DNA of 64,000 nt from Epithemia pelagica (taxonomy: Eukaryota > Protista > Bacillariophyta): positions 3,596,001-3,660,000 of the forward strand of contig OX337231.1 of the NCBI GenBank assembly GCA_946965045.2. The letters are read 5' to 3'. Below are positions 1,801 to 31,085 of this stretch, piece after piece. The translations under genes were made by a program, and so were the position numbers. Every line of letters begins with the position of its first letter. Within the stretch, counting starts at the first letter, position 1. The notes below the pieces were generated by a model. That model was not told the origin of the DNA and made no database searches. It was given only the letters and a program-made list of their open reading frames with translations.

Positions 1801-2625
1801 ATGACAACTACACTCCTTGTTCCGCAACTCCCATCACCTGCACCCACATCTTCATCATCATCATCATCATCATCATCATCTTATACTTCCATGAACGATC
1901 CTTACAACGCAACACCTCCATCAACGGATTCTATGCCAAGGCCCTTTGCTCCAGCCGCTCGAAGAATCACTCCAGTGCCTGCCATGCTGCTCCTTCAATT
2001 GCCATTGGCAACCCCCAAGAAGCAAGTGACATTTTACCCTACGGTCCAATACATTGCTGCCGAACACAAGGTCGACGACGATGAAAATGATCTATGGTAC
2101 AATATCAATGACATGCAAGCCTTTCGTGAACAAGCGCGAGTCGAGAGCCAACAACTCCACTTGGGATTGCCAAAGACCGACTCGGAGGACACGGAGGAAA
2201 CTACTCCAACCATGAACAACAAGAACAACAAGAACAACAAGAACCCAAAAGTGGCCAAGCCTTGTACTTTGGCTGTGAATGATGCTACACGAGGATTGGA
2301 AGCTCGCTTTTGCCGAGAACGCAGTCGTCGCAAATATTTGGCCACCAAATGTGTCGTCCGAGCGCAATCGAAATTGACACCGGATCGTTTGGCTGCCCTG
2401 TCCAGTCGGTGTTCGAAATGGGCCGTAGATTTGGCTCATACCGAAGCCGTGCGCGATTATCAACGAGCCTATGGTACTACAGCATCAAAAGAATGTAACG
2501 TGGACGAGCAACCACCACACGCCCAACAACAACAATCAAGAAACCAAGTTTCCAAACGATCCTTGAATGGCTCTTCTTCTCCTCACGAGCTAGGAGACCG
2601 AAGAGTCCGTGCCCGCATCGCCTAA
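1801..2625 (+). CDS. Unknown diatom family X member 1 (RVxF-like motif, WY..FR.EAR, RGLE..C.ER.RR, RDYQRAY)
   Basis: Single-exon ORF from ATG 1801. Motif blocks KKQVTFYPTVQYI / LWYNINDMQAFREQAR / TRGLEARFCRERSRRKY / WAVDLAHTEAVRDYQRAY are shared with other loci in the window. Confidence 0.85.
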   Translation: MTTTLLVPQLPSPAPTSSSSSSSSSSSYTSMNDPYNATPPSTDSMPRPFAPAARRITPVPAMLLLQLPLATPKKQVTFYPTVQYIAAEHKVDDDENDLWYNINDMQAFREQARVESQQLHLGLPKTDSEDTEETTPTMNNKNNKNNKNPKVAKPCTLAVNDATRGLEARFCRERSRRKYLATKCVVRAQSKLTPDRLAALSSRCSKWAVDLAHTEAVRDYQRAYGTTASKECNVDEQPPHAQQQQSRNQVSKRSLNGSSSPHELGDRRVRARIA

Positions 2626-3526
2626 TCCGTTCTGGCCGATGCTGTACAAAACCAAAGTGGAACTTTTCACTGTAACACCTCCTCTAGCTAGAGATGTACT
2701 ATTATTACACACCATAGACAGGAGCAGTCTTTACCCAACTCCATTGACATGGATCGCCTATTCGCACTTCCGTATCCAAATCGTTGTTGCTTTGCGGAAC
2801 CTGGTGTCTACAAGATAGATCCTTCCAGGAACCAATACCTATCAAGAAGCATTCGCTAGAGGGTTCACTTACCGATGCTGCGTAACCTACTCCCACTAGA
2901 ATAGAGCAAGAGGCATAGATCATAGATAGATTGAGTTGATTCGTGTGAAATGTCCAGACGTGATGTTGGGAGTCGGGAGATCGTTCGCGGGCACTGGGTT
3001 CTCGTTCTCTCTTTGACCTTGCGTATTCAGTCGCAGACTCCTGCCAAAGACACACCACACACCAGACACACCACATCCAACCAACGTATGAGCAATGACC
3101 AATGACCTTGCCCAAATTGCACAAACGAAACACGAAGAAAACGAGACACGATTGCCGATCGGCGAAGAAGGAACGATTGAATTGCCTCTTCAAACTTCAA
3201 AGTGTCGGATATTGTAGTCGTCCCCGGGTTTGAATCACACATAGAAAAGGATACTCAAAAATACATAGTGCATGCTTCGCGGAGCGCGTGCGTCCGTCCA
3301 TCCATCCCCCAAATCCAGTCACTCCCAAAACCACACGAGCTCCTTGCTCCTTCCCGAAAACGACGGACACATCATTCCCTCAAAATTCGCAACCCGATCA
3401 TCACTTTTATTCTCATACATTCTTGGGACAGTGTCGCTGAACCACCCTCACAACAAAAAACAGAAAACACGTCTCTTGTGCGTTTCTGTTGTCACTCTAT
3501 CTGACTCTTGAATTGCACCTCCCCCA

Positions 3527-4591
3527 ATGGCAGCCACAGTGTTCACGTCTATTCCACTGCCTTCCTCTGCATCGACTTCATTCATGTCGTGGAGCAACCT
3601 CAATCACGTCTCATCCTTACCCCTCACCATCACCAACACAACAACAGCACCAACGACCGGTGCATTGCATTCACACTATCCAGTACGACAAGAGCAGTCT
3701 GCTCCGTCCTTTGTGCATCAACCACAACATTTCTACATTGCTTCATCGTTTCCTTGTCCAGCATCTCCATCGACTTCCATGGTGGATTGTACCTTGAGAA
3801 CGAACGCCCTTAGTGCTCCTTCCATAGTTCACAGCAGCGCTGCAACGGTCCACCCCTGGCTGCCATCCTCCTCATCCTGGAGGGACGAGCCACATCCTCA
3901 CGTTGTATCTCCCACCCCCATGTGTCCCAAAAAGAAGGTTTCCTTTGCCTCCGATGTCCAACTCATTTTGTTTCAGTCTCCCTCCCCCGAGGCATCATCA
4001 TCCTCACCGAAACTCTCGTGGTACAATGAATCGGATTTGGCACTCTTTCGAGATGAAGCACGTTTGGAATGCCGAAAATTACGACTCCATGCCTGGCAGC
4101 ATCGTCAACCACCACAGGGTGTTAACGACCACCAAACCCAAACTCCATCAGTCCCCCAACCATCATCATTCGGAGAGAATCCAACCCAACCCTGCGCTTC
4201 ATCATCTTCTTCGTCGTCCTTGTGTTCCATGGCCTTGAATGAGGAAACACGGGGATTGGAAGGTCGCATGTGTCGCGAACGGCAACGTCGTCGATATTTG
4301 GCCATTCAAGCCGTGGTCCGGGGACAACATCAAGTATCCTCCGCCGAACGATTGGCCGCCTTGTACCAACGATGTACCAAATGGGCGGCCCGATTGGCCC
4401 ATTGCGAAGGACAACGAGATTTTCAACGAGCCTATGCACTGCACCATGGCAACACGCAACAGAGTGGTGGTGGTGGCGGCGTCAAGCGGGTCCATGCCGA
4501 GGCACACCCATTTACCGAGTGTTGGTTGTCGCCCAATGATGATCCGGACGATGTCTTTAATGATCGTCGAGTACGACAACGCGTCTCGTGA
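3527..4591 (+). CDS. Unknown family X member 2
   Basis: 354-aa ORF: KKKVSFASDVQLI / SWYNESDLALFRDEAR / TRGLEGRMCRERQRRRY / WAARLAHCEGQRDFQRAY. The C-terminus DRRVRQRVS resembles DRRVRARIA of X1. Confidence 0.85.
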   Translation: MAATVFTSIPLPSSASTSFMSWSNLNHVSSLPLTITNTTTAPTTGALHSHYPVRQEQSAPSFVHQPQHFYIASSFPCPASPSTSMVDCTLRTNALSAPSIVHSSAATVHPWLPSSSSWRDEPHPHVVSPTPMCPKKKVSFASDVQLILFQSPSPEASSSSPKLSWYNESDLALFRDEARLECRKLRLHAWQHRQPPQGVNDHQTQTPSVPQPSSFGENPTQPCASSSSSSSLCSMALNEETRGLEGRMCRERQRRRYLAIQAVVRGQHQVSSAERLAALYQRCTKWAARLAHCEGQRDFQRAYALHHGNTQQSGGGGGVKRVHAEAHPFTECWLSPNDDPDDVFNDRRVRQRVS

Positions 4592-5497
4592 AGAGGCCAC
4601 GAGCTACTTGAGAGACGAACAAGATAAAGTTGGCTCAAACATCCTCTCTGTTGTCGCTTTTCGGTTGGATCAGGCAGACCACACACAAGGATGCTATAAC
4701 GATCGCACGTGGCCGGCAAACAAAGAAAAAGACATGGACCGGTACACCGGTACGGACTGCATTCTCTCTTGATCGAAAGAGAGAGGATGATCAACTATAG
4801 CTCCATTCCTAGCGGTAACGAAACTCTCCGTGATGAACGCTAGACGATTCTTTGTTTGCTGTTTCTACTATCTAGTATCAGTAGTACTGTCGGTTCTCCA
4901 TTGCAATGGGCGAAGCACAATCTCTACTTTTGCAACGGACGAAACGCAATCTCTATAGGAGTACGTCAGATGTTGGTGGCCGCTGGATATGCCTTTTCAC
5001 TCCGTGGTTTCACGCAACAAGCCAACAGACATCATCTAAGTAGCTGGATACGACTCGAACGATGGACTACCTAGGTAGGTAGGTTTACATGCTTTTCACC
5101 GATTGTACGTCCGGCAATGGAAGGGTGCAGCATCACCCACGCACTCGGAACGGATCCTGCAAGCGATCCAGAAGTGTTTGTGTCGTGACAACGAATCGAT
5201 TCGGAATTCCATTCGGTTCCACGACGCGACGGTCGACGAGGCACCACGACAAATGGTGCTGGATCATTTCACGAAGCGCTTCAACTACATCGATTTGAAC
5301 AAGTGCTTTTGAAATGAAGCGTATAGTTTTCCACCACCAAGATCTATGCATGGTACCGCAAAACGCATGAAAGAAACACACTCCAGGATCCTGATACTGT
5401 TTCGCTTGTTCCGTGAAATTTGTGGTGTTAGTTTAGTTGACCTTCCCTGCTTCCGTTTAGGAAACTATAGTTTTATATAGTTGCATTGGTTCTTGCT

Positions 5498-7288
5498 TTA
5501 TTGCGCCGTCATGTTTTCCTTGTTAATCAAATGACTGGTGGTTTCCACGAGATGCAAGACCTTGTCAATATCGGCCGCCCAATCGGACAAGACTTGTTCG
5601 GGGGATTGCGGGGCCGAAAATCGCACAATGCCTTGCGGGCGATCCATTTTGGCATAAATGACACCATCACTGACCATACTGGCCACTTCCTGTTCGGCCC
5701 GATCCACGGGCAATTGGAGCAATTGCGCCAACCGAACGAGTCGGATGCGTCGATAATACTTGGCGACAATGCGAATGTTGTGTTGAATGATCCGGCGGTG
5801 CAAGACTTGTTTCCAATGGGAGGCCAAATCATCTTGTGTGACTTGTGAGAGGGTTTCCAATTCTTCGACTTGGCCCGGCATGGGATGGGCAATAATTTCT
5901 TGTTTCAAAAAGAGTTCAATCACCTTTTGAAAGGCCGTTGGCAACTGCTCGAGTGGACTGGTATCGGCTTGAATCCGATGCATCATGTCTTGTTGTTCAT
6001 TGCCATAGGGACTGAGAGCCAAAAAGACAATGGTAGCCTTGAGAGCTTCCATTCGGTCGGTATCGTCATCGTCGTCCGGTGTCGTTGTTGTGGTGGTGGC
6101 GTCTACTTGCATTTGGGTGGTGGCAGTGGACCGTGTCGAATAAATGGCATGATAATCCTTGGCCAATTCCAAGGCATCTTTGGCATGTCGTCGATGATAC
6201 AAGGTCAACAAATGATAAAAGCGCGTCTTGTATTCTTCCATGCCTTCTTCTTGCAATTGTTTGCGCGACACCTTCCCGGCGACAATGTGCGCTCGAACAT
6301 AATCTTGTTTGGCCAAGGTCAAGCGCAATTGTTCCAAAATAAATTCCACCTTTTCTCGTTTCGATAAGGATCCAAAGGTTTCGACATGGACATCTTGCAA
6401 GGTCTCGGCGGCGCCGGCCACATCGCCCTTGGCTTCCTAGACAAACCGGACACACAAGAAGAGAGGTGGTTGTTTGGTGTCGTGTAGCAGAAAGAGGGAA
6501 ATGAATGAGGAAAAGAACATCAGAGACGCAAAAACAAAGAGAAGATAACAAGAACAACAGCATGAAGACCCAAATGAGGACAGCCAGTTGCCAATAGTAA
6601 AAGAAGATATACAGGTTGCCTGCTCAAGATAGTTTGGGTAGTTTGCATGAATCGATCGAAGAATTCGTCCCATGTATAAAATCGTTCTTGATGCGTGCTC
6701 CGCAAGTTTTGTGGATATTCCAAAAACCCAGGTTCGTAGCATACATGAACACATGCCGCAACAGAGATCACCTACCTTAATTGTGGCCAATGCGCGCGTC
6801 AATTGGGCTCGTTCTCGTTCCAAAAAGATTTTGCCAATGGTAATATCGAGCAAGGCCTTGACCAACTCGTTTCGTTTGGTTTCCTCCACCTCATTTGTGA
6901 CGGGCAGTGGTGTATAGGGTACCTCTACACACCATGGCAAGGCCGTTTGCACCAAGGCTTGGACGGCGGCGGTTTTTTGCGATCGTCGCGTACTGAGGGT
7001 TTGCAAGGTGGACAACAAGACTTCTCCCGTTGCTGAATTATCGTGACTGTGACACAAGGTCAAGGCTGTTTCACAAACCTTGACCAAGGAAGGATTGTCG
7101 TTGTGCACCCGACATTTTTTCTCCAAGGCCAACAACAAGGCTAAGGCTTCTTGCAATTGTCCGGATTCCGCCAGTTGTTGCGCTTGTGGTACCTTGGCAC
7201 TCGTTTCCGCCGAAAAATCCACGCGTTCTTCCAATTGACCACCCGATGCGGCACCACTGCTACCTGTGACACCTCCCGAAGCGAACAT
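5498..7288 (-). CDS. RPN5: 26S proteasome lid subunit RPN5/PSMD12, two exons
   Basis: Exon 1 7288-6776 (MFASGG...ERERAQLTRALATIK), GT-AG intron 6775-6437, exon 2 6436-5498 (EAKGDVAGAAETLQDVHVETFGS...EKVEFILEQLRL...RIIQHNIRIVAKYYRRI...IYAKMDRPQGIVRF...LHLVETTSHLINKENM), giving a PCI-domain C-terminus. Confidence 0.95.
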
Positions 7289-7574
7289 GTTGCTGCTGCT
7301 ACAAACGGTTGTTCGAGAAAGGAAAAGGACGACAACAAAGGTCCGAGCATTTTCGATTTGGATCCTCAAAGGTCTTGTGGGGCGGAGGTCTTCCCCCCAC
7401 CGAAACGTGACTTGTGACGTCATGTCTTTTTGTGGACTGTGTTATGTGGTTTCGAAGCGAGGCTATCTCTCCTTCTTTTGTGTTTCTTCGTGTTTGGCAG
7501 TCTCCAGAACAAAAGCGGAAACAAACCATTCTCTATTTGTTGATGCTCCAATCGAAATACACTATACTTATTCT

Positions 7575-8790
7575 TTATAGATACTGTTTGTAGATATCTT
7601 CAAAGGATCCCGTTTGTTGTTTACCACCGCCATCTAATTTCTTTTGGCCACCTCCCGTAGAGGATCCGTACAAGTCGTTCAAGGCCTTGGCCTTTTGCGA
7701 GGTTTTGCCACCCCCGCCACTTTTCAAGGCATCTTTTTCGGCCTGTTGGGCTTGGAGGGCCATTTGTTGGGCATATTCTTGAAAGCTCACATATCCGTCC
7801 TTGTCGTGATCAAAGTCTTCAAATTTGGGATAATCGGCTTCGGACAAGCCGGGATAATGACTCAAATAATTTTGCACATACATGTTGAATTCGGCGCGGG
7901 AAATGCGATCGTCGCCATCGACATCGGGTTGTTTGAATTCATCGTAATCTCGTTGGAGGGCTTCCAATTCGTGTTGGTGTTCCGTTTCTTTCAAGGCTTC
8001 TTGATACTGATTCACAAGGTAGGTCAATTCCTGAACCTGTTCCGTGAGTTTGTACACATCGTTGTAATATTGACTGTACAATTGCTTTTGTTCGCGTTGA
8101 AATTTACGCTTGGCCTTGCGCAAGACACGGTGACTGTGATACTTGCCGCCGGCCCACCAACCCACGGCGCCCGTCGCAAACAATTTCATCCAGCCGGGAC
8201 TATCCGAACCGAATCATTCGAATTATAACAGAAGTGCAATCCAATACACAAGAGGAAAATGTGCAGCGAGAAACGAGACCAACAAGCAAAACGGTAACAG
8301 ACAAGGTGCCGTGAAACAGCAAACCATTGATTCAACACAAAAAAGAAGACCAAACAGATGCAGTGGTTGAGACATTCACATAGCCATGAACGACGGCGAA
8401 TCACACTCGCAGAACCACGATCCTGGTCCCCCAAGCAAGCAACCAACCAACGACAAGTACAATTTTAGACTTGGACACTTACCCTCCACCGGCCGCAGCA
8501 TCTTGACCCATGAGTTTGTCTTGTTGTCGAGCGGCGTAGTCATGATAGAGATTGTCATTGTCATTGTATCCACCACCGCCACCACCACCATTGCCGTATT
8601 CGTCGGGATAATAATCCTCGTCTCCACCACCACCACCCGCAGCAGCACCATAGTCATTGTATTCGCCATAGGGATCCGATTGTCCCTGAACCGTGCCCAA
8701 CCACACGAGCAATAACAACGACAGCAGCACCGATGACACGATTGCGGTTCGCCTCCGAGTAGAGGAATGGGTTTGGTGAGACGACCGCAT
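7575..8790 (-). CDS. Signal-peptide / single-pass membrane protein with coiled coil and two EF-hands (gene A), two exons
   Basis: Exon 1 8790 (or 8841)-8483, phase-2 GT-AG intron 8482-8200, exon 2 8199-7575. Hydrophobic leader VLLSLLLLVWLGTVQG, acidic Tyr/Gly segment, GWWAGGKYHS, canonical loops DVDGDDRISRAEF and DHDKDGYVSFQEY. Confidence 0.85.
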
Positions 8791-9426
8791 GCGGCTGGTT
8801 CTCTTGGTCGTTGTGGCCACTGGTCTTGTCATGATGGTCATCAGACACTAGGAAAAGGTTTGCAGTCACTGTCGGATGGTCAATGGAAACAGTAAGGGAA
8901 GAGATTTGTCGACCTTTCCCAGAGATCACGTGTCAAGAGAGGATGGTGACAAGCTTGGATCTGGATCTGTCCAAGCCCTTCGTCTTCTCCGTTCGTCGAT
9001 CGCGATGGAGGGAGAAGATACGTTGCCGTGTGTGATTGTGATGGTTTGTGCGTGATGGCTCATCGTGGGAAGACACGTGGAACCTTCTTCGTCCGTCCGT
9101 CTTTACCGAACGCGTGGAAGGTGTGTAAATTGGGTCGCTCTTAGGTCGTGTTTATAGAAAAGTGACAGGTGGAAGATTTTTGCCAATGAAGATACGTACC
9201 GACACCGACATTGCTTTGCTCCGTCTCGATCGACTTGAAACGAACTCTCTTGGTCTGCTTTCTTGGATTTTCTCCGTAAACCTGCTCGCTTGGTGCAGAA
9301 AAGTCTAAGAGGAACACGAGAAAGTGAGAAGTTGCATTGATTGATTCCAACGATTTAGATTCTTCGAGAGAAAACCGATACTACGGGCCGACAATTCATC
9401 GCAATCATTGAAGGAGACAACACACC

Positions 9427-10209
9427 ATGGTCACTTTGTCATCCAAGAGTCACTCAACAGTCTCCAGTTGGCAGACAACCCTGTTTCATTCATTCCTTCG
9501 ATCGTTGGTATGGATGTTGGTTTTGAGCATGGGAGGAGTGCAAGGACAACAGTACGGTGGTGATGGTGGGAGTGACCCGTACTACGAACCCGAATACGAA
9601 CAAGACAATTTGTATTATGATTATGCCGCACGGCAAGAACAAAAGGGGTGAGTCCTAACGAACCAGAACAACAACAACAACAATGCAGCAAAGATTCTTT
9701 TGCCAAAAAAAACATCCATATCGAGACACGACCCTGCCAGTTGTTCTGAAAGGGTGTCATGTCCATTGGGCCCGTCGTTCTTTGGATCGTTCGGTCGAGG
9801 CTTTCCCAAACTGGATCATGTCACGTCTATGCGGCTCTGTCTTGTTGGATTGCTTCTCATTTTTCTGTTCTTGCATCATGCTGTGTTGTGCTTGTTTTCG
9901 TCATCTTGGTGTTTTTGCTGTGTATTCGCCTGGAGCAGCGACGGCGCCATGGCGGGTGGTGGCGGTGCCATGGGGGGCGGCGGGGGTCCCCCCACGTGGT
10001 TGGTGGCCGGTGGATCGGCCGTCATGGGATGGTGGATGGGCGGGTCCTATCATTCGCGCAAACAAAAAAAGAAGTTAACGTCCAAATTCAAGGCCGATCA
10101 AAAAGCCCTCTATCAACAATATTACGAAGATGTCTATGCCTTGCAAATACAAAATGCCGAACTCATTCAAGCCTTGGAACAAATGGGTGTCAAAATCCAA
10201 AAACAGTAA
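9427..10209 (+). CDS. Paralog of gene A lacking EF-hands (gene B), two exons
   Basis: Exon 1 9427-9647, phase-2 GT-AG intron 9648-9938, exon 2 9939-10209. Shares DNLY(Y/H)DYAARQ, GWWxGGxYHS and QKxLYxQYYxDVY with gene A. Confidence 0.85.
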
Positions 10210-16164: not shown

Positions 16165-18084
16165 TCATCTTGGTCCTTGTTGTTGCTGGGGAAAGGATAC
16201 TCGACGAAAGCGGGGTTGGAGAGTCTCTTCTTCTTCTTCCCCATTGGGCTTGTCGTAGCTGTCCTGGTTCATCAAGCTTGTCCTGGTAGGAGGACAAAAC
16301 AAAGACGAATAAGAAGGAGTCATCATCAAGGAGGGGCGAGTGGTACTACTGGAACCATGTCGAGAATCTGCCGTCTCGGAGCGTGGTTGAGTTGCTGAAG
16401 TTTCTTCTAGTTCTTGTTCTTTGGAAAGGGCATGAAAGCGAGTCCGTTTCAGAGGAGGACATGCCACGCGGTACTGCGGCGCTGGTCCAGGACGAGACAC
16501 AACGGGACGGTTCTGGCTGCTGCTGTTGCTGCTCTGGTCGGGCCAACTGCTGCTGCTGCCATCCAGCGGCAGGGGACGACCGTAGGCTTGTTGATAATCG
16601 CGACGGGCTTCTTCCAAGGCCAATTGCACGGCCCATCGAGAATGGTGTCGGGATGTTTGTGCCACTACAGCCGTTGTATGATCCACACTCGGAAACGCAG
16701 CACCACCACCACAAGACGACGATGATGAAGGAGACGCGCAGGGCCTTAAGGTCAAGGAGGACGATGACGACGACGTGGATTCCGAACGCAAGGATCGTGG
16801 GGGTGGCAGAGTGGGCAAGGAAACATCCGAGACTCGTCGTCGTTGTTGGGTGGTTTGACATTTTTGCCAGGTGGCGACAATGCGTTTAATGGTAATGTAT
16901 CTTCGTCGTTGACGTTCCAAACAGGCCCGTTGTTCCAATCCACGTGTTTCATCCTCCTCATCAATAGTGTGACAATAATCGGAATGATGATAACGGGACT
17001 TGGACAAACACTGACAGGTAGTGGAAGACGATCGGAGCGGTGAAAGGGGATTTTCGGAAGCGGGAGAGACAAAGGGAGTCGTGGACAAGGACAGCAAGGA
17101 ATCCGTGTCGGCTCCTCCTCCGGAAAACTTGGCTCCACTCAAGGAATGTCTACGCATTACAGTCAATGGTTTTTGTGGTGTCGGGGATCGCACTCCACTC
17201 GTTAGTGAAGACAACAACAAGGGATCCTCCTCTGGTTCTTGTTGGGTGTTGCCAGGAGACTGGGGTGTGGAACACGAGTGGTGACTGCGATTGGCACTGG
17301 CAGCTGTGTGTGCCGCCTGGGAACACGTGGGAGAAGAAGATGTCGTCGTCGTTGTTCGAGTGGAATGAATCATGGCCATGGAATGGGAACATTGTTCTCT
17401 CAAGTGTCGACAAACCTCTCGTGCTTCTTGACGAAAGCGTTCCAAATCTTGAACATTGTACCACAAGAGCGATTGCCAGTTCTCCTCCTCCTCCTCCTTG
17501 TTCGTATCCATGGGAGAGGGAGCATCCATCACGTGCTGAATGGGAGTGGCAAAGACTACGGTCTTTCGTGACACTGAAGACAGTGCAGAAGAAGACGAAG
17601 ACGATGCATCCAATGATCCAGGCCGAGGCCGTTTGCGACCTGGAGAATGGCATGTGGTGGTGGATCGAGACGGGGGAGAATTCAGGGCTGTACTGGATGC
17701 CAGAGCTGTACTCGTTGGTGAAGTCGACTCGTGCTTGGAGGATGTTGTTGTTGTTGTTCTTTTGGTAGGAGAATGGAGTCGCCATTGTCTCGGTTGTTTG
17801 GCCGGGGACACGGGTGGTTGGGGCCGAGTCCGACAAGCTTTCCAAATTTCCTTGAGAATGATGCGTTCTTGATATTCATCAATTTGCGTGGTATACAATT
17901 CCTGGAGTTTGGCTGCCATGGTGGTAGTAGAAGTCTTTTGGCAAGAAGGTGTTGGTGTGGTGGTGGTGGAAGGGGCCGACCACCAAATGGCGGAGGAGGA
18001 TGAGGAGTTGGATCGATGATGGTGGGTGTGATGGTCCTCCCACTCTTCGTCTTCGTCGGACAGCCGAGGAGGTGCAACAGTCAT
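16165..18084 (-). CDS. Unknown family X member 3 (long, Ser/Thr-rich)
   Basis: RKTVVFATPIQHV / LLWYNVQDLERFRQEAR / TRGLEQRACLERQRRRY / WAVQLALEEARRDYQQAY. ATG 18084 is the likely start (ORF track starts at 18123). Confidence 0.85.
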   Translation of the reverse strand: MTVAPPRLSDEDEEWEDHHTHHHRSNSSSSSAIWWSAPSTTTTPTPSCQKTSTTTMAAKLQELYTTQIDEYQERIILKEIWKACRTRPQPPVSPAKQPRQWRLHSPTKRTTTTTSSKHESTSPTSTALASSTALNSPPSRSTTTCHSPGRKRPRPGSLDASSSSSSALSSVSRKTVVFATPIQHVMDAPSPMDTNKEEEEENWQSLLWYNVQDLERFRQEAREVCRHLREQCSHSMAMIHSTRTTTTTSSSPTCSQAAHTAASANRSHHSCSTPQSPGNTQQEPEEDPLLLSSLTSGVRSPTPQKPLTVMRRHSLSGAKFSGGGADTDSLLSLSTTPFVSPASENPLSPLRSSSTTCQCLSKSRYHHSDYCHTIDEEDETRGLEQRACLERQRRRYITIKRIVATWQKCQTTQQRRRVSDVSLPTLPPPRSLRSESTSSSSSSLTLRPCASPSSSSSCGGGAAFPSVDHTTAVVAQTSRHHSRWAVQLALEEARRDYQQAYGRPLPLDGSSSSWPDQSSNSSSQNRPVVSRPGPAPQYRVACPPLKRTRFHALSKEQELEETSATQPRSETADSRHGSSSTTRPSLMMTPSYSSLFCPPTRTSLMNQDSYDKPNGEEEEETLQPRFRRVSFPQQQQGPR

Positions 18085-20794: not shown

Positions 20795-22315
20795 ATGGTT
20801 TGGGACACCACGTGGACCGAACCAACAACAACAGCACGATCAGCAGCATCGTTGCACCCATACGACTATGACGACAAGACGGATCCAACCACCATGATGA
20901 GTAATTGTGTTCGTGACTTGTATTGGACTCATATTGACCAAGATCAAGAACGCATCATGCTCCAGGAAATTTGGCAACAACAAGAACAACAGGAACAACA
21001 ACCAGTTTCTCCCACAAGAACCACCACCACAACCACATCGAGAACGACACGCCCCCACTGTCCGACGCCTTCTCCGCCGCCGCCTTGTTTGCGACGAACT
21101 TCCACCAGCACAAGCTCTTCTTCGTCTTCGTCTTCGTCTTCGTCGTCTTCACTGTCCAATAGCACCAACACGCCTAGTAGCAGTGCCGACTCTTGGCAAC
21201 GACCATCGTGTTTGGTATTCTCCAACGACCCTTCTCGTGGTGGTGGTCACAAAGAAAAGAACCCAGCACAGGCCAGCACCCGTCCCGACCAAACAACCAC
21301 AACAACACGCGCGCACAAGCGTACCGTCCACTTTGATATCCACATTCGCTGGATTCCGTCCCCCTCTCCCTTGGAGCAGCAGCAGCAAGTGTCGGCCTCA
21401 CAAGACCCCTACTCCCCAGACGACACCAACGATAACCAGGACACCGCCCGCCGCCATGCCTTGTGGTATACGGTTCCCGAATTGATTCAGTTTCGCCACG
21501 AAGCACGAGTCTTGTGTCGCCAATTGCGCCTGCAACAACAACAACAACAAAAGTCGACGTTGCGACGAAAACGACCGCGAGACTCTCACCACACGACGGT
21601 CCGGCCAGCACCCATGATGGCCGAGTGGCCACTGTCCAGTAGGAGCACCATCACCACCCAATCGTCCAACCATGAGGATTTGAAGGAGGATCGTACTACT
21701 ACTAAAAATACCACCACCACAACAACACGCGGCTTGGAACAACGAGCCTGTTTGGAACGACAACGACGACGGTACGTGACCTTACAAAATGTCGTGACCA
21801 CCTACCGTCAATGGCGGCGGAGGTACACCAACCACCGCCCACCACCACAAGACAACGACGACAAGGACGGTGGTGATTGGAAGCGTCGGATTGCATCGTG
21901 GTCCACGTGGGCAGTCCGATTGGCACAATTGGAAGCGCAACGAGATTACGAACGGGCCTATGGAACCAAGCCGCAGCAGCAGCCTCGTGACAAGAACAAC
22001 TCGATCCGTACCTCGGCATCTTTTGCTTCTTCCAGGACCAACACTACGACGACGAAGCAGCCGGAGCATCCCATTCCCTCCATTTTATGGGTTCCCGTTA
22101 CTGACAGTACGACGATGGATGGCGATGTGTTGGAGCATGGATTGTCTCCCCACAACAACGATACGGTTGGCGAGAGGAACGCTTGGAAAGACACCACCAC
22201 GGATTGCCCCTACGTATCTCTTCATGAGAAAGAAAATCATGATAATGATGATGAGGAGGAGGAAGAGGATTCGTTGGATCGTTTGTGTCGGCACAAACGA
22301 CCACGCTGCATCTAA
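20795..22315 (+). CDS. Unknown family X member 4
   Basis: KRTVHFDIHIRWI / LWYTVPELIQFRHEAR / TRGLEQRACLERQRRRY / WAVRLAQLEAQRDYERAY; basic C-terminus RHKRPRCI. Confidence 0.85.
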   Translation: MVWDTTWTEPTTTARSAASLHPYDYDDKTDPTTMMSNCVRDLYWTHIDQDQERIMLQEIWQQQEQQEQQPVSPTRTTTTTTSRTTRPHCPTPSPPPPCLRRTSTSTSSSSSSSSSSSSSLSNSTNTPSSSADSWQRPSCLVFSNDPSRGGGHKEKNPAQASTRPDQTTTTTRAHKRTVHFDIHIRWIPSPSPLEQQQQVSASQDPYSPDDTNDNQDTARRHALWYTVPELIQFRHEARVLCRQLRLQQQQQQKSTLRRKRPRDSHHTTVRPAPMMAEWPLSSRSTITTQSSNHEDLKEDRTTTKNTTTTTTRGLEQRACLERQRRRYVTLQNVVTTYRQWRRRYTNHRPPPQDNDDKDGGDWKRRIASWSTWAVRLAQLEAQRDYERAYGTKPQQQPRDKNNSIRTSASFASSRTNTTTTKQPEHPIPSILWVPVTDSTTMDGDVLEHGLSPHNNDTVGERNAWKDTTTDCPYVSLHEKENHDNDDEEEEEDSLDRLCRHKRPRCI

Positions 22316-22329: not shown

Positions 22330-23100
22330 AACCAATGGACTGGGACACGGGGCCATGTTCCTCTTTATTTGCTTGCAAAGGTCCCACAACCAAAGAAGAA
22401 AACACAGGAGAGGCTCCTACGTGTTTTCGAGAATCGCGAGTGTCCAAAACACAACATAATAGGAAATGACGCATCCATGGCAAAATCGCCAGGAGAGGGT
22501 TTGGTCCTCTAGTGTTGATAGAGACATCTATAGCTATAGTAGGAAATGTGTACCTAACGATCCAATGGCGGTCGGGAATGGCTTTGAGTGTAACACTCTA
22601 TGGTTTATACTGTTTTGCCACTGTATGGCAATCTTGGACCGGAATTGTGAAAGGCAACCTCGTCTTATTGTAGTCCATATCGTGCTCTTGTAGAACTTGG
22701 TAGTGCTGGGATGTTTTCCTCCATGAGAGATTTTTCGACTACGCCGCCGGCTCCTCCAAGGATCCCCGAGTTTGTCGCAGTCCTGGAGGTTCCGAAACTC
22801 ATCGTTTCTACGTCCTCCCATTGGTTGTGAAGAGTACTATTCATGAATGATGCAAACCATTGACGTACGTGTGCGGTCTTCTTGTACTCCTATGTTCTAC
22901 GCAAAGTCGCGAACCAAAAGACGACCAAGTTCCTGCAACCATTGAAGCGCGTGTCTCATGGCAAGCATATTCTGATCTTGCCCCCCTTTTTGCTGCATCA
23001 CGAATTTGTGTAAAGCGTCTCAAGAGGATACATGGGAGGTTCATCACTTTGATTGACTGGGGGTGCGGTTTGTTCCATCCTCCGCCCCTGTGTGTCCAAC
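22330..23100. repeat. Duplicated intergenic block of the tandem array (homologous to about 25620-26270 and 31090-31380)
   Basis: Shared strings such as GGAGAGGGTTTGGTCCTC..GTGTTGATAGA..C..T, AACGATCCAATGG.GG and TGAATGATGCAAACCATTGAC recur at these places. Confidence 0.85.
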
Positions 23101-23155
23101 CACTGTGGAACCACAAACGAGCTTGCTGTCTTATTGGTTCAAGCTATTCTTATTA

Positions 23156-25186
23156 TTATTCTTTCTTGTGCAGGTGTGGTTGTTCTGGAGCTTTGGTTTT
23201 GTTCGGCAGTGTGTGTTGTTGTTGCTGCATCTTCTTTTTCAGGTTGCCTCGTCCAATATGGTGGACAAAGTCGATTTGATTCAACAGTTCTATCCGTTCG
23301 GGTGTCAATCGTGCTGTTTTGGTGCCTCTTCTCGCTGCAGTAGTAGTGCTGGTTGCGGAGTCCTTTCGTGACGACACGTATCGTTTGTAGGCCTTGCGTT
23401 GCATGGCCACCCATTCGCCCAAGGGTGGATTGTCGGGATACACGTGAGGGACCAAACAATGCCCATGGGTGGCATGATAGTCGACCAATTCTTGATACCG
23501 TTTGTGCCAAGCAGCTTCCAAGGGATTCCACTCAAAGCCAGGTACTTGTTCCAGCAAGCGAATCCGTTCTGGTGTAATGGGACGAATCACCGCCACGTTC
23601 TTGGTCGGGAGGATGGTCGTCGTCGCCGCCGTCGTCGCGCCATGGTTGTCGTCCTCTTGTTGATGCTGTTGATGATAGGCCCGACGTTGATTGTTCAACC
23701 ATTCGGATAAACTGCTCCCTTCGGGGATTTTCACATGACCATTCTGTTGGACAAAGGCCACGAGTTGTTGATAGTGTTGCTTCCAGGCGGTCTCATGAGG
23801 ATCCCAATCAAAGCCAATCGAATTCAATCGCTGCATCCGATCGAGTGTCAAGACGGGTCCCGAGATGGAAGGCTGTTTCTTGTTCTTGTTGTTGTGGCTG
23901 GCCTCGGTCTCTACAGTCTCCGACGAATGCTGTGATTGTTGTTGTTGTTGCTGTTGATAGTTGATGTAGGCCTGGCGTTGGGTTGCGACCCACGGTGCCA
24001 AAACTGGATACTCCTTGGATCGAATGGGGACTCGACAATGACCATGTTCCTTTTGATAGGCTACCAATTCTAGAAACTTGAGGTTCCATCGAGCATCCAA
24101 GACATTGATTTCAAAGTCCAATCGTTCTAACAAACGAACACGTCGTTTGGTCAAGGCGGCAGTCTTCCATCGACCACGACCACCCGGTTGTTGTTGTCGT
24201 TTGCCCAATTTGTAATTTCGAAAGGACTGACGTTCAATCTTGACCCACTTTCCCAATTCTGGATTGTCGGCATAGGTAGGAGGCACCAAACAATGTCCAT
24301 GTTTGTGATAGTAATCTACCAATTCAATGTATCGTTCAAACCATTGGTTAAAGACACGCCAGGAAATCTTCAGATGGTCCAACTTTTCTTGACGTTCCAA
24401 CGTCATGGTCGTTTGGGGGTTTCCTTCTTTCCAATGGCAAAATTCTCTACGTTGCTGCTGAAGCCACGTTTTGAGAGTGGGATGGTCCTTCCAAATGGCC
24501 TCGAGATCGATCAATTCGTTTTCTGCTTTTTCTTGTTGCTTGACACACTCGGCCAGTTTTTCATATTGACGACTCCATTCTGTCGTATTCTTCTTCTCCT
24601 TGTGGTTCCCAACGTTTTGGGTGTTGTTGTTGTCGTCGTCGTTGGATGCATGGTTGGGTTCCGCATCGAACGTAGTAGTATCAGTGTTGTTGTTGGTTGC
24701 TGTTGCTGCTGGGAGGGACGAAACGTGCCGTGTCGTAGCAGGAGTACCAGAAAAGGATGGGGATGAAAATGGCTGCTGCAACCAATCACAACAACAACTC
24801 AAGTGTTGCCTCCTCTCAAACGACGACAATAGTGGTGGTGGCTGTTGCAACTGCCAACCATTTCTTGTCAACAACCGAGTCCAAGAAGAAGAAAAGGAAG
24901 AAGAAGAAGAAGATCGTTTCGAGCGAGTATCATGAGCATTCTTCAAGAAGGTGGTTGTTTGCGGCAGAGCACTGAAAGATAGAGTAGAAGTAGAAGTACA
25001 GAAGTAAACGTTTCTGCTTGTCGTTGTCGTCACAGCGAAACTACTTCTTTGTTGTGTGGCCCACCACCTCAAGAATGTCGTCAACGACCCGCGGTGATGT
25101 TGTTCGTCGTGGTGTGAACCGAGCCATTGCCGCCGTCGTGGATTCACTGCTGTGCCAAGAAGCTTATTGTTATGATGGAATCTCAT
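23156..25186 (-). CDS. Stand-alone helicase-associated (HA, PF03457-like) repeat protein HA1, five repeats, long Arg/Ser-rich N-terminal leader
   Basis: Repeats such as WFERYIELVDYYHKHGHCLVPPTYADNPELGKWVKIER, WNLKFLELVAYQKEHGHCRVP and WHKRYQELVDYHATHGHCLVP, each followed by an LT.ER..LL...F.W type helix. No helicase motifs. ATG 25186 (MRFHH) is the likely start. Confidence 0.9.
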   Translation of the reverse strand: MRFHHNNKLLGTAVNPRRRQWLGSHHDEQHHRGSLTTFLRWWATQQRSSFAVTTTTSRNVYFCTSTSTLSFSALPQTTTFLKNAHDTRSKRSSSSSSFSSSWTRLLTRNGWQLQQPPPLLSSFERRQHLSCCCDWLQQPFSSPSFSGTPATTRHVSSLPAATATNNNTDTTTFDAEPNHASNDDDNNNTQNVGNHKEKKNTTEWSRQYEKLAECVKQQEKAENELIDLEAIWKDHPTLKTWLQQQRREFCHWKEGNPQTTMTLERQEKLDHLKISWRVFNQWFERYIELVDYYHKHGHCLVPPTYADNPELGKWVKIERQSFRNYKLGKRQQQPGGRGRWKTAALTKRRVRLLERLDFEINVLDARWNLKFLELVAYQKEHGHCRVPIRSKEYPVLAPWVATQRQAYINYQQQQQQQSQHSSETVETEASHNNKNKKQPSISGPVLTLDRMQRLNSIGFDWDPHETAWKQHYQQLVAFVQQNGHVKIPEGSSLSEWLNNQRRAYHQQHQQEDDNHGATTAATTTILPTKNVAVIRPITPERIRLLEQVPGFEWNPLEAAWHKRYQELVDYHATHGHCLVPHVYPDNPPLGEWVAMQRKAYKRYVSSRKDSATSTTTAARRGTKTARLTPERIELLNQIDFVHHIGRGNLKKKMQQQQHTLPNKTKAPEQPHLHKKE

Positions 25187-25459
25187 TTTGGTTCCGATGC
25201 TCTTTTTCTCTCTCGCTCTTTTGGACACGAAAGACGAACATGGACCCGGCTCGTTTTCAAGGAGAGAAAGTGTCCAACCTTCACAGGAAAGCGGCATGGA
25301 TCAACCGCAAGAAGTGTGGTCGTGCAACATAATATTATATGCCAGACTGCGAATTTACAGCAAGCAATCTATCCGCGACTCCGATGGGGTTTCAGCAACT
25401 CTAACCCTATTGTCTTTGTTATGCTTGTGGTTTTCTGTTGTTTTGTTCGTCTTTTGTGA

Positions 25460-25620
25460 AGATGCCAAAGATATCATCGCTTTGGGCGTCGAAAGAAGAC
25501 AGGATCGTCTATCAGTATACAAGCTAGATGCCGAAAGCCCTCTTTTGTCTTGGGAAAACGGTCTCGATTCATGATGGGTTCCATCAATTGTGGGTGTGGT
25601 GGTTGTTGTTGGTGCTGGGC
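25460..25620 (+). pseudogene. 5' fragment of the coiled-coil (CC) gene with the start codon mutated
   Basis: GCCGAAAGCCCTCTTTTGTC-TTG-GGAAAACGGTCTCGATTCATGATGGGTTCCATC matches the CC1/CC2 start, with TTG at 25550 where they have ATG. The sequence then jumps into the block found downstream of X4. Confidence 0.8.
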
Positions 25621-26311
25621 CTGGAGAGGGTTTGGTCCTCGTGTGTTGATAGACACCTCTGTAGCTAGCAGATACGTGTGAAATGAACGATCCAATGGCG
25701 GCCGCCAGGAAGCATGGAATGGTTCTATGGCTATCACTCTAGTTTACCGTTTCACCACTGTCTGGCAATCTTCGATTCGATTGCAGCCTCGTATTAGTTG
25801 TAGTCCATCTCGCGCTCTGGTACGTTCACGACGATTCATTCGCCCAGTAAGAAGGAACTTGGTAGCCCCGGAATGAATGTGAGAAAAAGGCCACGCCTGG
25901 TAGCCTGTCCCTTCTCACAGTCCTGAGGTTCCGAAACTCATTGCCCTCCAAAGGCTCTTCCCATCGGTTGTCGACAGTCATATGCATTCCTGAATGATGC
26001 AAACCATTGACTTGTGCGCGGTGCTCTTGTACTCGTATGCTCTTCACAAAATCGAGAACCAAACAACGACCAAGTTCTTGCAACCATTGAATGGTGGGTC
26101 TCATTGCAAGCATATTCTGACCTTGTCCCCTTTCCGGCATCGCGAATGTTTATGGATTGGAGGTCCGTCACTTTTTTGACAGCGGGTGCTATTTGTTTCA
26201 TCCTCCACCCATGTTTGCGCATCCTCCACCCATGTTTATGCGTTCGGATCCACCAACCACTATGGAACCACAACTGAACTCGCTGGTATTGTCGTATTGG
26301 TTCAAGGAGTC

Positions 26312-28288
26312 CTATTCTTTTTCTTCTCCTTCTTCTTTCTTGTACAGACAAGGCTGCTCTGGAGCTTTTGTTTTCTCCGGTGGTGCTTGTTGTTGTTGTT
26401 GCTTCTTTTTTCTCATGTTGTCTCGTCCAGTTTGGTGGAAAAAGTCGATTTGATTCAACAGTTCGATCCGTTCGGGTGTCAATCGTGCCGTTCTGGGCCC
26501 TTCTCTTGCTGCAGCAGAAGAGGTAGTGGTTGGGGATACGTCCTTTCGTGATGACACATGATGTTTGTAGGCCCTGCGTTGATCGTACACCCACAACCCA
26601 AAGGGTGGATTGTCGGGATACACGTGAGGGACCAAACAATGCCCATGGGTGGCATGATAGTCGACCAATTCTTGATACCGTTTCTGCCAAGCAGTTTCCA
26701 AGGGATTCCACTCAAAGCCCGGAACTTGTTCCAACAAGCGAATCCGTTCCGGTGTAATGAAAGGACCCTTTACCACGTTCTTCGTGGAGCCATGCTTCTC
26801 GTCCTCTTCTTGTTGTTGCTGATGCTGTCGTTGATGATAGGCGTGGCGTTGCTTGTACAGCCACATGGCTAAACTACTGGTAATGCCCTCTTTGGGGATT
26901 TTCACATGACCATGCCGTTTGGCAAAAGCCACGAGTTGTTGATAGTGTTGCTGCCAGGCGGTCTCCAAAGGATCCCAATCAAAGCCAATCGAATTCAATC
27001 GTTGCATCCGATCGGGTGTCAAGACGGTTCCCGAGTTTAAAGACTTCCTTTTGTTCTTGTTTTTGTTGCTGGCCTCGGTCTTCACAGTCGACAAATGCTG
27101 TGATTGTTGTTGTTGTTGATAGTTCATGTAGACTTTACGTTGGGTTTTGACCCACTCTGCCAAGACGGGATACTCCTTGGATCGATCGGGGACCCGACAA
27201 TGACCATGGTGTTTTTGATAGGCTACCAATTCTCGAAACTTGAGGTTCCATCGAGCATCCAAGACATTTATTTCAAAGTCCAATCGATCAAACAAACGAA
27301 CACGTCGTTTGGTCAAGGCAGTCCATCGACGACGACCACTACCCGGCTGTTGTTGTCGTTTGCCCAATTTGTAATTTCGAAAGGACTGTCGTTGCATTTT
27401 GACCCACTTTCCCAGTTCCGGATTGTCTTCATAGGTAGGAGGCACCAAACAATGCCCATGTTTGTGATGGTAGTCTACCAATTCAATGTATCGATCAAAC
27501 CATTGGTTAAAGACACGCCAGGGAATCTTGAAATGATCCAACTTTTCTTGACGTTCCAACGTCATGGTCGTTTGGGGGTTTCCTTCTTTCCAAAGGCAAA
27601 AGTCTCTACGTTGTTGCTGGAGCCACGTTTTGAGAGTGGGATGGTCCTTACAAATGGCCTCGAGATCGACTGATTCATTTTCTTGTTGTTTTCCTTGTTG
27701 TTGCTTGACGCACTCGGCCAGTTTCTGGTACAGACGATTCCATTCGTCCTGGTGGTTCTCGTTGTTGTTTTTCTGACCAGTGTCGTCGTCCTTGAATTCG
27801 AGGTCGTCCTTTTTTCTTGTGGATTCATCCGCATGGAACAAGACCTTGTCTGTGTCATGGTTTGTCATTCTTTGTACGGAGGATGAGGAGAAGCAGTGTC
27901 TTGTTGTCGTCCGATGATACAAGACTGGAGATGGACGTGAGTGTCGCCCATGCCAACCAAACAAAAAGAAGGGGGGAGGAGGAGTGCTTCTTGGAAACAG
28001 CGACGACGACGGCAGTCGCTGTGACTGCCAACCGTTCCATAACAAACGGATCCATAAGAAGGACGAGGATGGGTTCGAGAAGAGAGGAGTGACTGTCTCT
28101 TTCCAGGTGATTTTTCTCGTAGCGCTTGTCGTAGTAGTACTATTGGTACAGGATCTTACGAATATGTCGTCGTTTCTGCCTGTTTTTACGAGGCTCCTTC
28201 TTTTGTTTGTTGTGGTCCTCCACAAGAACAAGAAGGTTCGTAGTACTTGTCGTTTTTGTGGATCGAACCAAAGCAATTGCCGACTCAT
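26312..28288 (-). CDS. Stand-alone HA-repeat protein HA2, five repeats, mitochondrial-type leader
   Basis: Close paralog of HA1 (e.g. KDHPTLKTWLQQQRR, WFDRYIELVDYHHKHGHCLVPPTYEDNPELGKWV). The leader ends TTRHCFSSSSV. ATG 28288 (MSRQLLWFDPQ) or 28309. Confidence 0.9.
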   Translation of the reverse strand: MSRQLLWFDPQKRQVLRTFLFLWRTTTNKRRSLVKTGRNDDIFVRSCTNSTTTTSATRKITWKETVTPLFSNPSSSFLWIRLLWNGWQSQRLPSSSLFPRSTPPPPFFLFGWHGRHSRPSPVLYHRTTTRHCFSSSSVQRMTNHDTDKVLFHADESTRKKDDLEFKDDDTGQKNNNENHQDEWNRLYQKLAECVKQQQGKQQENESVDLEAICKDHPTLKTWLQQQRRDFCLWKEGNPQTTMTLERQEKLDHFKIPWRVFNQWFDRYIELVDYHHKHGHCLVPPTYEDNPELGKWVKMQRQSFRNYKLGKRQQQPGSGRRRWTALTKRRVRLFDRLDFEINVLDARWNLKFRELVAYQKHHGHCRVPDRSKEYPVLAEWVKTQRKVYMNYQQQQQSQHLSTVKTEASNKNKNKRKSLNSGTVLTPDRMQRLNSIGFDWDPLETAWQQHYQQLVAFAKRHGHVKIPKEGITSSLAMWLYKQRHAYHQRQHQQQQEEDEKHGSTKNVVKGPFITPERIRLLEQVPGFEWNPLETAWQKRYQELVDYHATHGHCLVPHVYPDNPPFGLWVYDQRRAYKHHVSSRKDVSPTTTSSAAAREGPRTARLTPERIELLNQIDFFHQTGRDNMRKKKQQQQQAPPEKTKAPEQPCLYKKEEGEEKE

Positions 28289-28699
28289 TCTGCTCCACAT
28301 GCACCTCATTCTTCCAACGATCTGTCTCTGTCTCTCTGTCTGTCTCTGTCTCTCTTTGTCTCTTTTGTTGCCACGCGTTCTCGGACCTTTTTCGTTCTTT
28401 GGAAGGAGAGTCTATCCCGACAACAACAACAAGAGAAAACAAAAAAGATACCGACTGAACCCTCTAAAACGCAAATCAAATAGCTATCGCTGATAGATCG
28501 CTTTTAATGTAAACTACTCCTAGGAGTACTATGGGACGTGAATAGACAAGATGATAGCAAGCATAGTTGGATCGCGGTCAATCTTCAGTCATGCTTTTGT
28601 CATCTTTCGTCTCTTCTTTGTGGTCGAGTTTTGGGACAAAGATACAAACGAGAGATCGTTGGGTGTCAAGAGAAGACAGGCCGAAAGCCCTCTTTTATC

Positions 28700-29801
28700 A
28701 TGGGACGACGGTCTCGATTCATGATGACTTCCATCAGTTGGATGTGGTGGTTGCTAATGCTGGAAACAGGGACCATTCTGCAGACATGTCATTCCTTGTT
28801 GTCGCCGCTCCACCCCTCGAACGTGGTGGTTCGATCCTCCATCTTTGACGGAACGACGGGTCGTTCATTGTTCCCTTCTAGCAGCACGCCCCGTAAACTG
28901 ACTCACGATCATCAAAATCCCTCCGAGGACCTCGATGCGTCTTCTTCTTCGCTCTGGCCGGCCAAGACACGCATTTTGCAAGACATGGTACAAACCCTGC
29001 AGCACGAACGTGACGCATTGCGACATCGATTGCACCAGCTTCAACAACAACCACCAACCGACAATAACGGCCATGACGAGGAGGTTCCCAACTCGACAGG
29101 GACCGACTGGCAAGACGCCTATTACCAACAATGGTTGTCGAAACCGTCCACAAAAGTGGCCTGGGACGCCCACATTCGAGAGGCGCAATCCCAATGGGAA
29201 ACCCAACATGTTCGACCCCTCCAACAAGATTGCGCACCTCCAACAACAACAACAACAACAAGCACTACTTCTCGTCCACAGCACCACGAACCAAACCAAA
29301 ACCACGGACAGTAGTACGAATACTACCATGGGATTGGTAAAGAGTTCGACGCTTCTTGTGGCACAACAACAACTACTACAACAAGAGGAATGGCGTTTGG
29401 AACGTAAAACCTTGGAACACGAGTGTCTGGAATTGCAGCGTCAACTGGACCAGGCCACAGCCCAAATTGCCGCAGCCTCGGCCTCTCGTACCACCACAGC
29501 AAACCAAGAGTTCAGTGACACGCAACAACAACAACACTGGCAGGAGCGGTTGAGAGAACAGCAACAAGAATATACGCAAACTTGGCAAGCTCGTCGCGTC
29601 CAAGTGTCGGAAGCCAAACAAATTGCCAAGGCCGCTGTCCGGACGGCACAATCACGAGCCCATGAAGCGGTATCGACCTGGCATGCTGCCCAACAGGAAT
29701 TGTTTCAACAAAAACAAGAATTGCAACACTTGCAACAAGACGAATGGCAAGAACAAGAACAACAAAATGACAATGAGGATGACAAGGAACAAGAACCGTG
29801 A
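28700..29801 (+). pseudogene. Frameshifted copy CC2 of the coiled-coil gene
   Basis: ATG 28700 (MGRRSRFMM...CHSLLSP). Relative to CC1 it lacks 23 nt at 29229/29230, which splits it into ORFs 28538-29314 and 28935-29801. Confidence 0.8.
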
Positions 29802-30039
29802 CGAGCAGGAGAGCTGTCTGGTGGTAACACCAGGATATAATAGAGGCCAACAAGGTTGTTTTTGCACACACCATGGATTGGTCCACTCTAGCACGTATAC
29901 GAAAAAACACTGGGAGACACATTGGATTGCTTTCTTTTCCCCAATCTAATTATGGGCTTCCCCAGCGAACGAAAAGTTTCGGGAAAGCGTTGTCGGTTGC
30001 CGTGTTCATTCAAGAAAGAGCGGAAGAGAGAGAGAGAGA

Positions 30040-31085
30040 GAGAGCATTGGAAAAATCAGATTCAGCAAGCTTGGCAAAATGAATTGACCATTGCTCTTGT
30101 TTGATCCACAACAACAACAACTACAACAATTATTTTTTTCTTGTGGAGGTGGTGGAGGATGACGACCCCAAGAAAAGGAGCCAAAGCATGAAAAATCAAG
30201 TGTGGAAGAACAAGAAGACTGTCACTCCTCTCTGCTCGACCCCACCGTACTACTGCTCTGACCACCACAACGCGTGGTATGGAACAACGAGCCTGTTTGG
30301 AACGACAACGACGACGGAACGTGACCTTACTAAATGTAGTGACAACATGCTGTCAATGGTGGAGGCAACGACAACCACCACCATCACTGCAGACCAAAAA
30401 CGACCAACCACCACCAAAATTCACGACGACGACGGTTGTTGGATGCGTCGGATTACATCGTGATCCATGAGGGCGGTCCGATTGGCACAATTGGAACCGC
30501 AACGAGATTACGAACGGACCTATGGAACCAAGCAACAACAACTCGATCCGTACCTCGGGATCTTCTTCTTCTTCTTCTTCTTCTTCTTCTTTCAGGACCA
30601 ACACCACGAAGACGATAACGTCTCCTCACAAGCAACAGCAGCAAGAGCATCTTATTCCCTCCATTTCATGGGTTCCTATTATTTCACGATGGATGGCGAC
30701 ATGTTAGAGCATGGATTGTCTCTCAAGAACAACAACAAGAACACGGTGAATAGGAGGATCGCTTGGAAACACACCACCAAGGATTGTTGCAACCTTCTTC
30801 ATGATGAGAAAGATATACATGATGATGATAATGAGGAGGCGGAGGAGCTTCCCATTCGTTCCATTTTATGGGGTCTTGTCACTGGCAGTACGCTTTGTTG
30901 GAGCATGGATTGTCTCCCAACAACAACGACACGATAGACAGGAGGAACACAAGGAAAGACACGACCAAGGATTGGCGCTACGTTTTCCTCGTCATGAGAG
31001 AGAGAATCGCGATAATGATGATATTCAGGAGGAGGAGGATTCGTTGGATCGTTTGTGTCGGCACAAACGACCACGTTGCATCTAA
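30040..31085 (+). pseudogene. Chimeric pseudogene: inverted HA-gene 5' end fused to the 3' half of a family X gene
   Basis: About 30075-30200 matches the HA2/HA3 start on the opposite strand. From about 30265 it follows X4 (RGMEQRACLERQRRR...RDYERTY...RHKRPRCI) with a frameshift, a TGG>TGA stop at 30461 and a duplicated C-terminal segment. Confidence 0.8.

Follow-up and report, generated by a model that had tools for sequence, protein, structure and literature searches.

A stretch of 64,000 nucleotides from the diatom Epithemia pelagica (positions 3,596,001 to 3,660,000 of contig OX337231.1, assembly GCA_946965045.2; hereafter the window) holds four intact genes, X1 to X4, whose products belong to a protein family that, judged by its sequences, is real, large, widespread, unannotated and undescribed. 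Its members share an N-terminal string, in which a basic RVxF motif is followed by a pair of hydrophobic residues (PhiPhi) and an invariant tryptophan, and a very basic helical part behind it. A regulator of protein phosphatase 1 (PP1) is the best single reading of this family, and we would put it a little short of an even chance: the sequence evidence appears as good as such evidence gets for a PP1 docking string, whereas the single structural indicator points the opposite way and the string lacks one of its elements.

PP1 works through interchangeable regulatory subunits, and nearly all of those described so far are, to our knowledge, from animals, yeast or plants. Diatoms contribute a major share of primary production in the sea, and their proteome is in large part unnamed; our literature searches found no RVxF-type PP1 regulator in them. 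If the family does regulate PP1, it would join the PP1 cofactors as a new member without homology to the others. It offers a concrete starting point, open to inexpensive tests, for work on phosphatase signalling in diatoms. Should the PP1 reading fail, there would still be a widespread, conserved and probably nuclear basic domain that deserves a family definition.

Members of the family in the window

The members and their conserved blocks were located by translation of the reading frames combined with a six-frame motif scan, which returned every motif that the initial annotation had read in these genes, each in the same place. They are the following.

1801..2625, plus strand: X1, intact family member, 274 aa; RVxF motif KKQVTF 2017-2034, PhiPhi stretch VQYI 2044-2055, WY helix 2095-2160, RGLE block 2287-2358, WA block 2419-2472, RRVRAR 2599-2616.
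3527..4591, plus strand: X2, intact family member, 354 aa; RVxF motif KKKVSF 3929-3946, PhiPhi stretch VQLI 3956-3967, WY helix 4019-4084, RGLE block 4247-4318, WA block 4382-4435, RRVRQR 4565-4582.
16165..18084, minus strand: X3, intact family member, 639 aa counted from the first ATG; RVxF motif RKTVVF 17568-17551, PhiPhi stretch IQHV at +4 to +7, WY helix 17463-17398, RGLE block 16947-16876, WA block 16635-16582, RFRRVSF within 16212-16165.
20795..22315, plus strand: X4, intact family member, 506 aa; RVxF motif KRTVHF 21317-21334, PhiPhi stretch IRWI 21344-21355, WY helix 21464-21529, RGLE block 21725-21796, WA block 21908-21961, RHKRPR 22289-22306.
30261..31344, plus strand: pseudogene fragment made up of the 3' half of X4 and about 260 bp of its downstream flank (blastn, list of open reading frames, three-frame translation).

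Outside the conserved blocks the four proteins consist of low-complexity sequence rich in Ser, Thr and Gln, and in X3 some 150 aa of such low-complexity sequence separate the WY helix from the RGLE block. The proteins nevertheless find each other in BLASTP comparisons (X1-X2 at 7e-23, X1-X4 at 1e-9, X3-X4 at 2e-9 and X1-X3 at about 2e-6). Their alignment contains 39 invariant columns, among them V and F of the RVxF motif, W-Y, R-G-L-E and W-A, and the motif columns are invariant at an identity of 27-37%. On this sequence comparison we regard X1, X2, X3 and X4 as paralogs whose homology is beyond doubt.

The initial annotation had spoken of a family of five. The fifth copy is a duplicate of the 3' half of X4, to which it is 77-85% identical at the DNA level with gaps (blastn), and it has decayed. 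Its RGME block (30273-30314), the damaged WA block and the tail lie in three different frames, and the copy is further marked by frameshifts, by a stop codon in frame immediately ahead of the WA block and by duplication within the tail; three-frame translation and the motif scan revealed neither an RVxF nor a WY block in it, nor anything upstream that resembles either. It is thus a pseudogene fragment, and the window holds four intact members plus this one remnant.

The RVxF-PhiPhi-W string across the family

The composition of the string was determined over 135 non-redundant members with an N-terminus, as representatives that are at most 50% identical. Counted from F, [RK] is found at -4 in 83% and [RHK] at -3 in 61% of the members; V is present in 96% (129/135), and F or W without exception (135/135). 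The initial annotation had named a failure of V and F to persist throughout the family as an outcome that would speak against it, and both residues proved to be conserved family-wide. The x position is occupied by R, S, Q, H or T, while D, E, P, Y, M and I are all absent, and a residue of the set {FIMYDP}, which is forbidden in the wider published consensus, occurs once in the 135 sequences. Two such consensus patterns have been published, a strict one, [HKR][ACHKMNQRSTV]V[CHKNQRST][FW], and a wider one, [KRL][KRSTAMVHNQ][VI]{FIMYDP}[FW] (PMC3792071). The strict pattern fits 90 and the wider one 103 of the 135 members, and X1 to X4 all conform.

The residues that follow are likewise constrained. 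After F there is [AS] at +1 and, in 46% of the members, [DE] at +2; the PhiPhi pair is formed by V, I or L at +6 (61%) and I, V or L at +7 (46%), with YI, LI, HV and WI as the corresponding residues of X1 to X4. The invariant Trp stands a median of 26 residues after F (quartiles 24-29; 21 in X1), and the first helix begins at W+3 in AlphaFold2 models. A profile of the N-terminal block, compared with 177,635 distinct PDB sequences, had as its best match the stretch RRVSFADTIKVF of KNL1 (6czo_B, an RVSF-PhiPhi string). A KNL1 peptide with this string was reportedly crystallised on PP1 by Bajaj et al. in 2018. Moreover, for three query parts the nearest named clusters in a protein language-model search were those of PF10488 (PP1c_bdg), with scores of 0.82-0.89.

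Architecture and fold of the conserved module

The string opens a module of about 150 aa that consists of six parts in fixed order: (i) the basic RVxF motif, [RK][RHK]-V-[RSQHT]-F-[AS]-[ED]; (ii) the PhiPhi pair at +6/+7; (iii) S-P-L together with an acidic linker; (iv) the invariant Trp-Tyr and, 3 residues on, a six-turn amphipathic helix with a ladder of Arg residues; (v) a very basic helical hairpin, TRGLE.R.C.ERQRRKY ... WA..LA..EA.RDY..AY; and (vi) a C-terminal RRVRxR motif. The first helix has its Arg ladder at W+10, +14, +18 and +21 next to a hydrophobic heptad, the second is marked by invariant R-G-L-E and E-R-Q-R-R-K-Y, and the third by a stripe of Ala. Of 146 members, 92 carry the C-terminal motif, RRVRxR(L/V), among their final 30 residues, as against none of the shuffled tails. 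The basic C-termini pointed out in the initial annotation are a conserved trait, and the tail resembles a nuclear localization signal (NLS), consistent with a nuclear location.

Two monomers were modelled with AlphaFold2, X1 itself (mean predicted local distance difference test score, pLDDT, 67.6) and a compact member of the family, P0019 (mean pLDDT 84.2). The models agree on three helices, WY, RGLE and WA, and residues 21-165 of P0019 come out as one confident unit (predicted template modelling score, pTM, 0.60). A mean-field direct coupling analysis (DCA) of 194 sequences, with an effective number (Neff) of 165, placed 26 inter-helix pairs among its top 80 and thereby supports a predicted three-helix bundle in which the hairpin packs against the first helix; the top pair, 37-101, was discarded as an artefact of an invariant column. 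What the module is related to was sought in several ways. No Pfam family matched X1 to X4, none recurred in more than 5 of the 146 members, and no DNA-binding helical family (bHLH, bZIP or others) scored well among them. Whole-module profile searches of the PDB sequences returned no match, and fold searches with both models (Foldseek against the PDB, exhaustive VIA and the Atlas fold search) returned generic helical hairpins (best Z 6.7) and no informative match. The module is thus a helical domain without known relative or known fold.

Each of the three helices of the bundle carries one Cys, conserved in 78-89% of the members (C116, C171 and C204 in X1, at about 2146, 2311 and 2410 of the window, with equivalents in X2 to X4). 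This pattern might reflect a redox switch or a metal site. Metal binding was also suggested by a weak CsoR-like fold match (Z 6.3) in combination with the three Cys, and was set aside as that match lies at background level.

Distribution, selection and expression

When 1.84 billion representatives were searched exhaustively with the family profile, 496 clusters, counted at 50% identity, reached E<=1e-3; 244 of them stayed at or below 1e-10, and 23 at or below 1e-30. Most of the 496 are 160-300 aa long and carry both the N- and the C-terminal blocks. Together with the lack of a consistent Pfam family, this bears out the initial description of an expanded and unannotated family. Word-based searches recovered far less: the word index gave 2 relatives for X1 and 46 matches for the member P0030, all unnamed or 'hypothetical', and a word search with the 146-sequence alignment gave 3 matches in which low-complexity words dominated.

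The records that bear a name are a single MMETSP transcript and 'hypothetical protein' entries from the diatom Epithemia clementina; the remaining ones stem from marine metagenomes, metatranscriptomes and ENA assemblies; the Atlas places X1 among Bacillariophyta clusters. As the cluster look-ups provided one named species and one MMETSP transcript, the documented taxonomic range is thin. Three such look-ups identified no homolog in a model diatom, and a scan of the viral contigs of IMG/VR with a small alignment gave no viral relative. The family has so far apparently been found in diatoms only. The label 'diatom-specific' of the initial annotation accordingly agrees with the named records, which are few.

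Related assemblies allow a closer look at the evolution of the genes. An assembly with 95-97% identity (L002) bears X1 and X2 in tandem, with an X1 copy that is 97% identical and may be an ortholog or an allele. Between X2 and its counterpart there, dN/dS is 0.38; the RVxF-PhiPhi string and the stretch of about 70 aa from RGLE to AY are unchanged, and one replacement falls in the WY helix while the other 22 lie outside the blocks. Purifying selection acts on the family blocks. In a more distant diatom (L003) an X3-like gene and one of the X1/X2 type stand together inside 5 kb, from which it follows that the cluster is in part old. P0003 (508 aa), an ortholog of X4, shares a foreign contig with the protein P0001.

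Contigs from polyA-selected marine RNA libraries match X1 (1972-2208 and 2538-2698) and X2 (3867-4153); no joints were seen in these contigs. They constitute weak evidence that X1 and X2 are expressed. Family members are also present among the MMETSP transcripts.

A proposed mode of action

If the family does target PP1, the N-terminal string would dock the catalytic subunit with its V and F in the RVxF pocket, and the PhiPhi pair would add a strand to beta-14 of PP1. The hydrophobic groove would be contacted by the Trp and the helix behind it, in the manner of Phactr1, neurabin and PPP1R15, and the basic three-helix bundle might obstruct the acidic groove, select a substrate, or direct the enzyme to nucleic acid or chromatin. 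Guiding the complex to the nucleus would fall to the RRVRxR tail, and the SP site with its acidic linker would be a possible phospho-switch. A more far-reaching proposal is that the family forms a fifth, lineage-specific class of cofactors with an RVxF-PhiPhi-W string, in which the Arg-ladder helix and the basic bundle remodel the grooves of PP1, and whose expansion in diatoms diversified nuclear PP1 holoenzymes in a manner unlike that of animals, fungi and plants. We hold that proposal to be somewhat unlikely.

Alternative explanations

Several points weigh against docking on PP1. RVxF-like strings are common in proteins, and this family was singled out in the first place because of one. The match with KNL1 (E 0.33) lacks significance, and the language-model scores for PP1c_bdg all stay below the 0.9 line of the tool. 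With the hidden Markov model of PF10488, 146 full-length members searched at E<=1 and 116 N-terminal blocks searched at E<=10 gave no match. In the known RVxF-PhiPhi-R-W string an Arg motif binds D71 of PP1 and is needed for the C-terminal groove of the enzyme. No conserved Arg stands between PhiPhi and W in the diatom proteins, where the linker is acidic and the share of basic residues peaks at 23% (W-4). Finally, free docking peptides are usually modelled at low confidence, whereas the RVxF-PhiPhi stretch has no secondary structure and yet reaches a pLDDT of 84 in X1 and of 90-92 in P0019, in monomers, which suggests that it lies on the helices of the protein itself. What the initial annotation had called a PP1-type architecture thus stands as regards the order and spacing of its elements and lacks the Arg motif. 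Likewise, its proposal of PP1 regulators or inhibitors gains from the family-wide adherence to the RVxF rules and from the string layout, and loses by the missing Arg motif and the ordered string.

The strongest alternative builds on these last points. The V-x-F / V-x-VI stretch would then be a structural strap, held in a groove that the three-helix bundle forms along the Ala stripe of its WA helix, and the protein would be a nuclear, basic factor that binds nucleic acid or chromatin, i.e. a diatom-specific regulator whose likeness to RVxF proteins is coincidental. The confident unit formed by residues 21-165 of P0019, the extremely basic character of the conserved residues (the Arg ladder, ERQRRKY and the NLS-like tail), the missing Arg motif and the lack of a Pfam PP1c_bdg match all agree with it. 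The couplings do not: compared with the 26 inter-helix pairs, the top 80 contain 2 string-helix pairs, both weak, although such a signal neither confirms nor excludes packing of the string on its own helices, since the key columns do not vary. A solvent-facing x in a strap should also admit D or E, and neither occurs there in the 135 members even though +1 to +3 are often acidic. Packing against an Arg-rich domain leaves the conserved basic residues before V unexplained, the linker from PhiPhi to W varies in length from 19 to 62 residues, and no DNA- or RNA-binding family or fold was matched. All in all we consider the strap a reasonable possibility, well short of an even chance, and retain docking on PP1 as the preferred reading.

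In a narrower proposal the family would be what corresponds in diatoms to PPP1R15/GADD34/DP71L. PP1 would be bound by the string while the helix after W and the hairpin recruit phosphorylated eIF2-alpha, and the protein would tune the integrated stress response. The language-model search points in this direction, as the nearest clusters are PF10488 proteins of giant viruses (0.84 for whole X1; 0.89 and 0.89 for the N-terminal part of the member P0012; 0.84 and 0.82 for the C-terminal part of P0019), and the viral proteins, of about 70 aa, are similar in size and likewise built from a short string and helices. Besides falling below the threshold, however, these matches have shared-feature counts of 101-165, which is under 170. 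Neither the Pfam model nor the PDB profile searches, in which no PPP1R15 chain appeared, nor the scan of IMG/VR lend support, so that the family is not a detectable member of the PPP1R15/DP71L group. A single cytosolic housekeeping role would, moreover, sit uneasily with an NLS-like tail and with divergent paralog clusters that number in the hundreds. This counterpart we judge improbable.

That the reading frames are not real genes at all, and share their blocks through repeated non-coding or transposon DNA, could be argued from the low-complexity regions, the one pseudogene and the transposase genes beside relatives in other diatoms, but it is refuted for practical purposes by the 496 clusters in other assemblies and transcriptomes, the confident model of P0019 and a dN/dS of 0.38 with nearly every change sparing the blocks, quite apart from long open frames that span all blocks in four copies and conservation at the protein level, with motif columns invariant at low overall identity.

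Further features of the genes and their surroundings

X3 and X4 have an additional N-terminal block in common, LY.T.ID..QERI.L.EIW (17929-17860 on the minus strand in X3, 20900-20965 in X4), which X1 and X2 do not have. The X3-like gene of another diatom (L003:5338-6723, minus strand) retains a similar block, ELYQTKIDEHQETIMIEEIM. Judged by its sequence, this additional helix-like motif defines a subfamily. At the very C-terminus of X3 (16212-16165), RFRRVSF takes the place of the usual RRVRxR, so that a second RVxF-like string stands at the end of the protein.

Two stretches 3' of X4 are repeated some 3 kb further on at 80-81% identity (22489-22572 as 25619-25701, and 22773-22990 as 25912-26133). 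They look like the remains of a segmental duplication around X4, distinct from the copy at 30261-31344. Within the latter a long T-rich run at 30540-30600, a run of Phe in one frame, lies where X4 has its Gln/Ser-rich linker.

In another diatom assembly (L001:1770-3992 and L003:1-1976), family members have genes for piggyBac-type transposases (PF13843, DDE_Tnp_1_7) a few kb away at most, and an RVT_2 retroelement also occurs nearby. Mobile elements may have helped to spread the family.

Comparison with known PP1 cofactors

The RVxF-PhiPhi-R-W string is common to four families, Phactr, neurabin/spinophilin, PNUTS and PPP1R15 (PMC7599070, PMC12185105). In Phactr1 it comprises F522, PhiPhi at 527-530 and W542, followed by a helix at 545-565 (PMC7599070), and in neurabin the string is followed by a helix of five turns (PMC12185105). 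The diatom proteins resemble these cofactors (Phactr1-4, neurabin/spinophilin, PNUTS and PPP1R15A/B) in having a basic RVxF motif with PhiPhi 5-8 residues on, a Trp about 20-26 residues after F, and, from W+3 on, a predicted amphipathic helix some 5-6 turns long. They differ in that they show no detectable sequence homology to them, have S-P-L and an acidic linker in the place of the Arg motif, and continue with a basic three-helix bundle instead of an RPEL, PDZ, TFIIS or eIF2-binding region. In addition, AlphaFold2 orders the string of the diatom proteins in the monomer, and their predicted post-W helix also belongs to a bundle of their own.

With the KNL1 (CASC5) peptide (6czo, chain B) the family consensus RRVrFaetveVi shares V, F and PhiPhi in register. 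KNL1 has a SILK motif upstream and neither a WY helix nor an RGLE/WA domain, and the likeness is one of motifs, not of homology. A short module of RVxF, PhiPhi, Trp and helices is also what characterizes PF10488, the PP1c_bdg domain of PPP1R15/GADD34, ICP34.5 of herpes simplex virus, DP71L of African swine fever virus and their relatives in giant viruses; the diatom family goes beyond this layout with an NLS-like tail, an additional hairpin of helices and its three conserved Cys.

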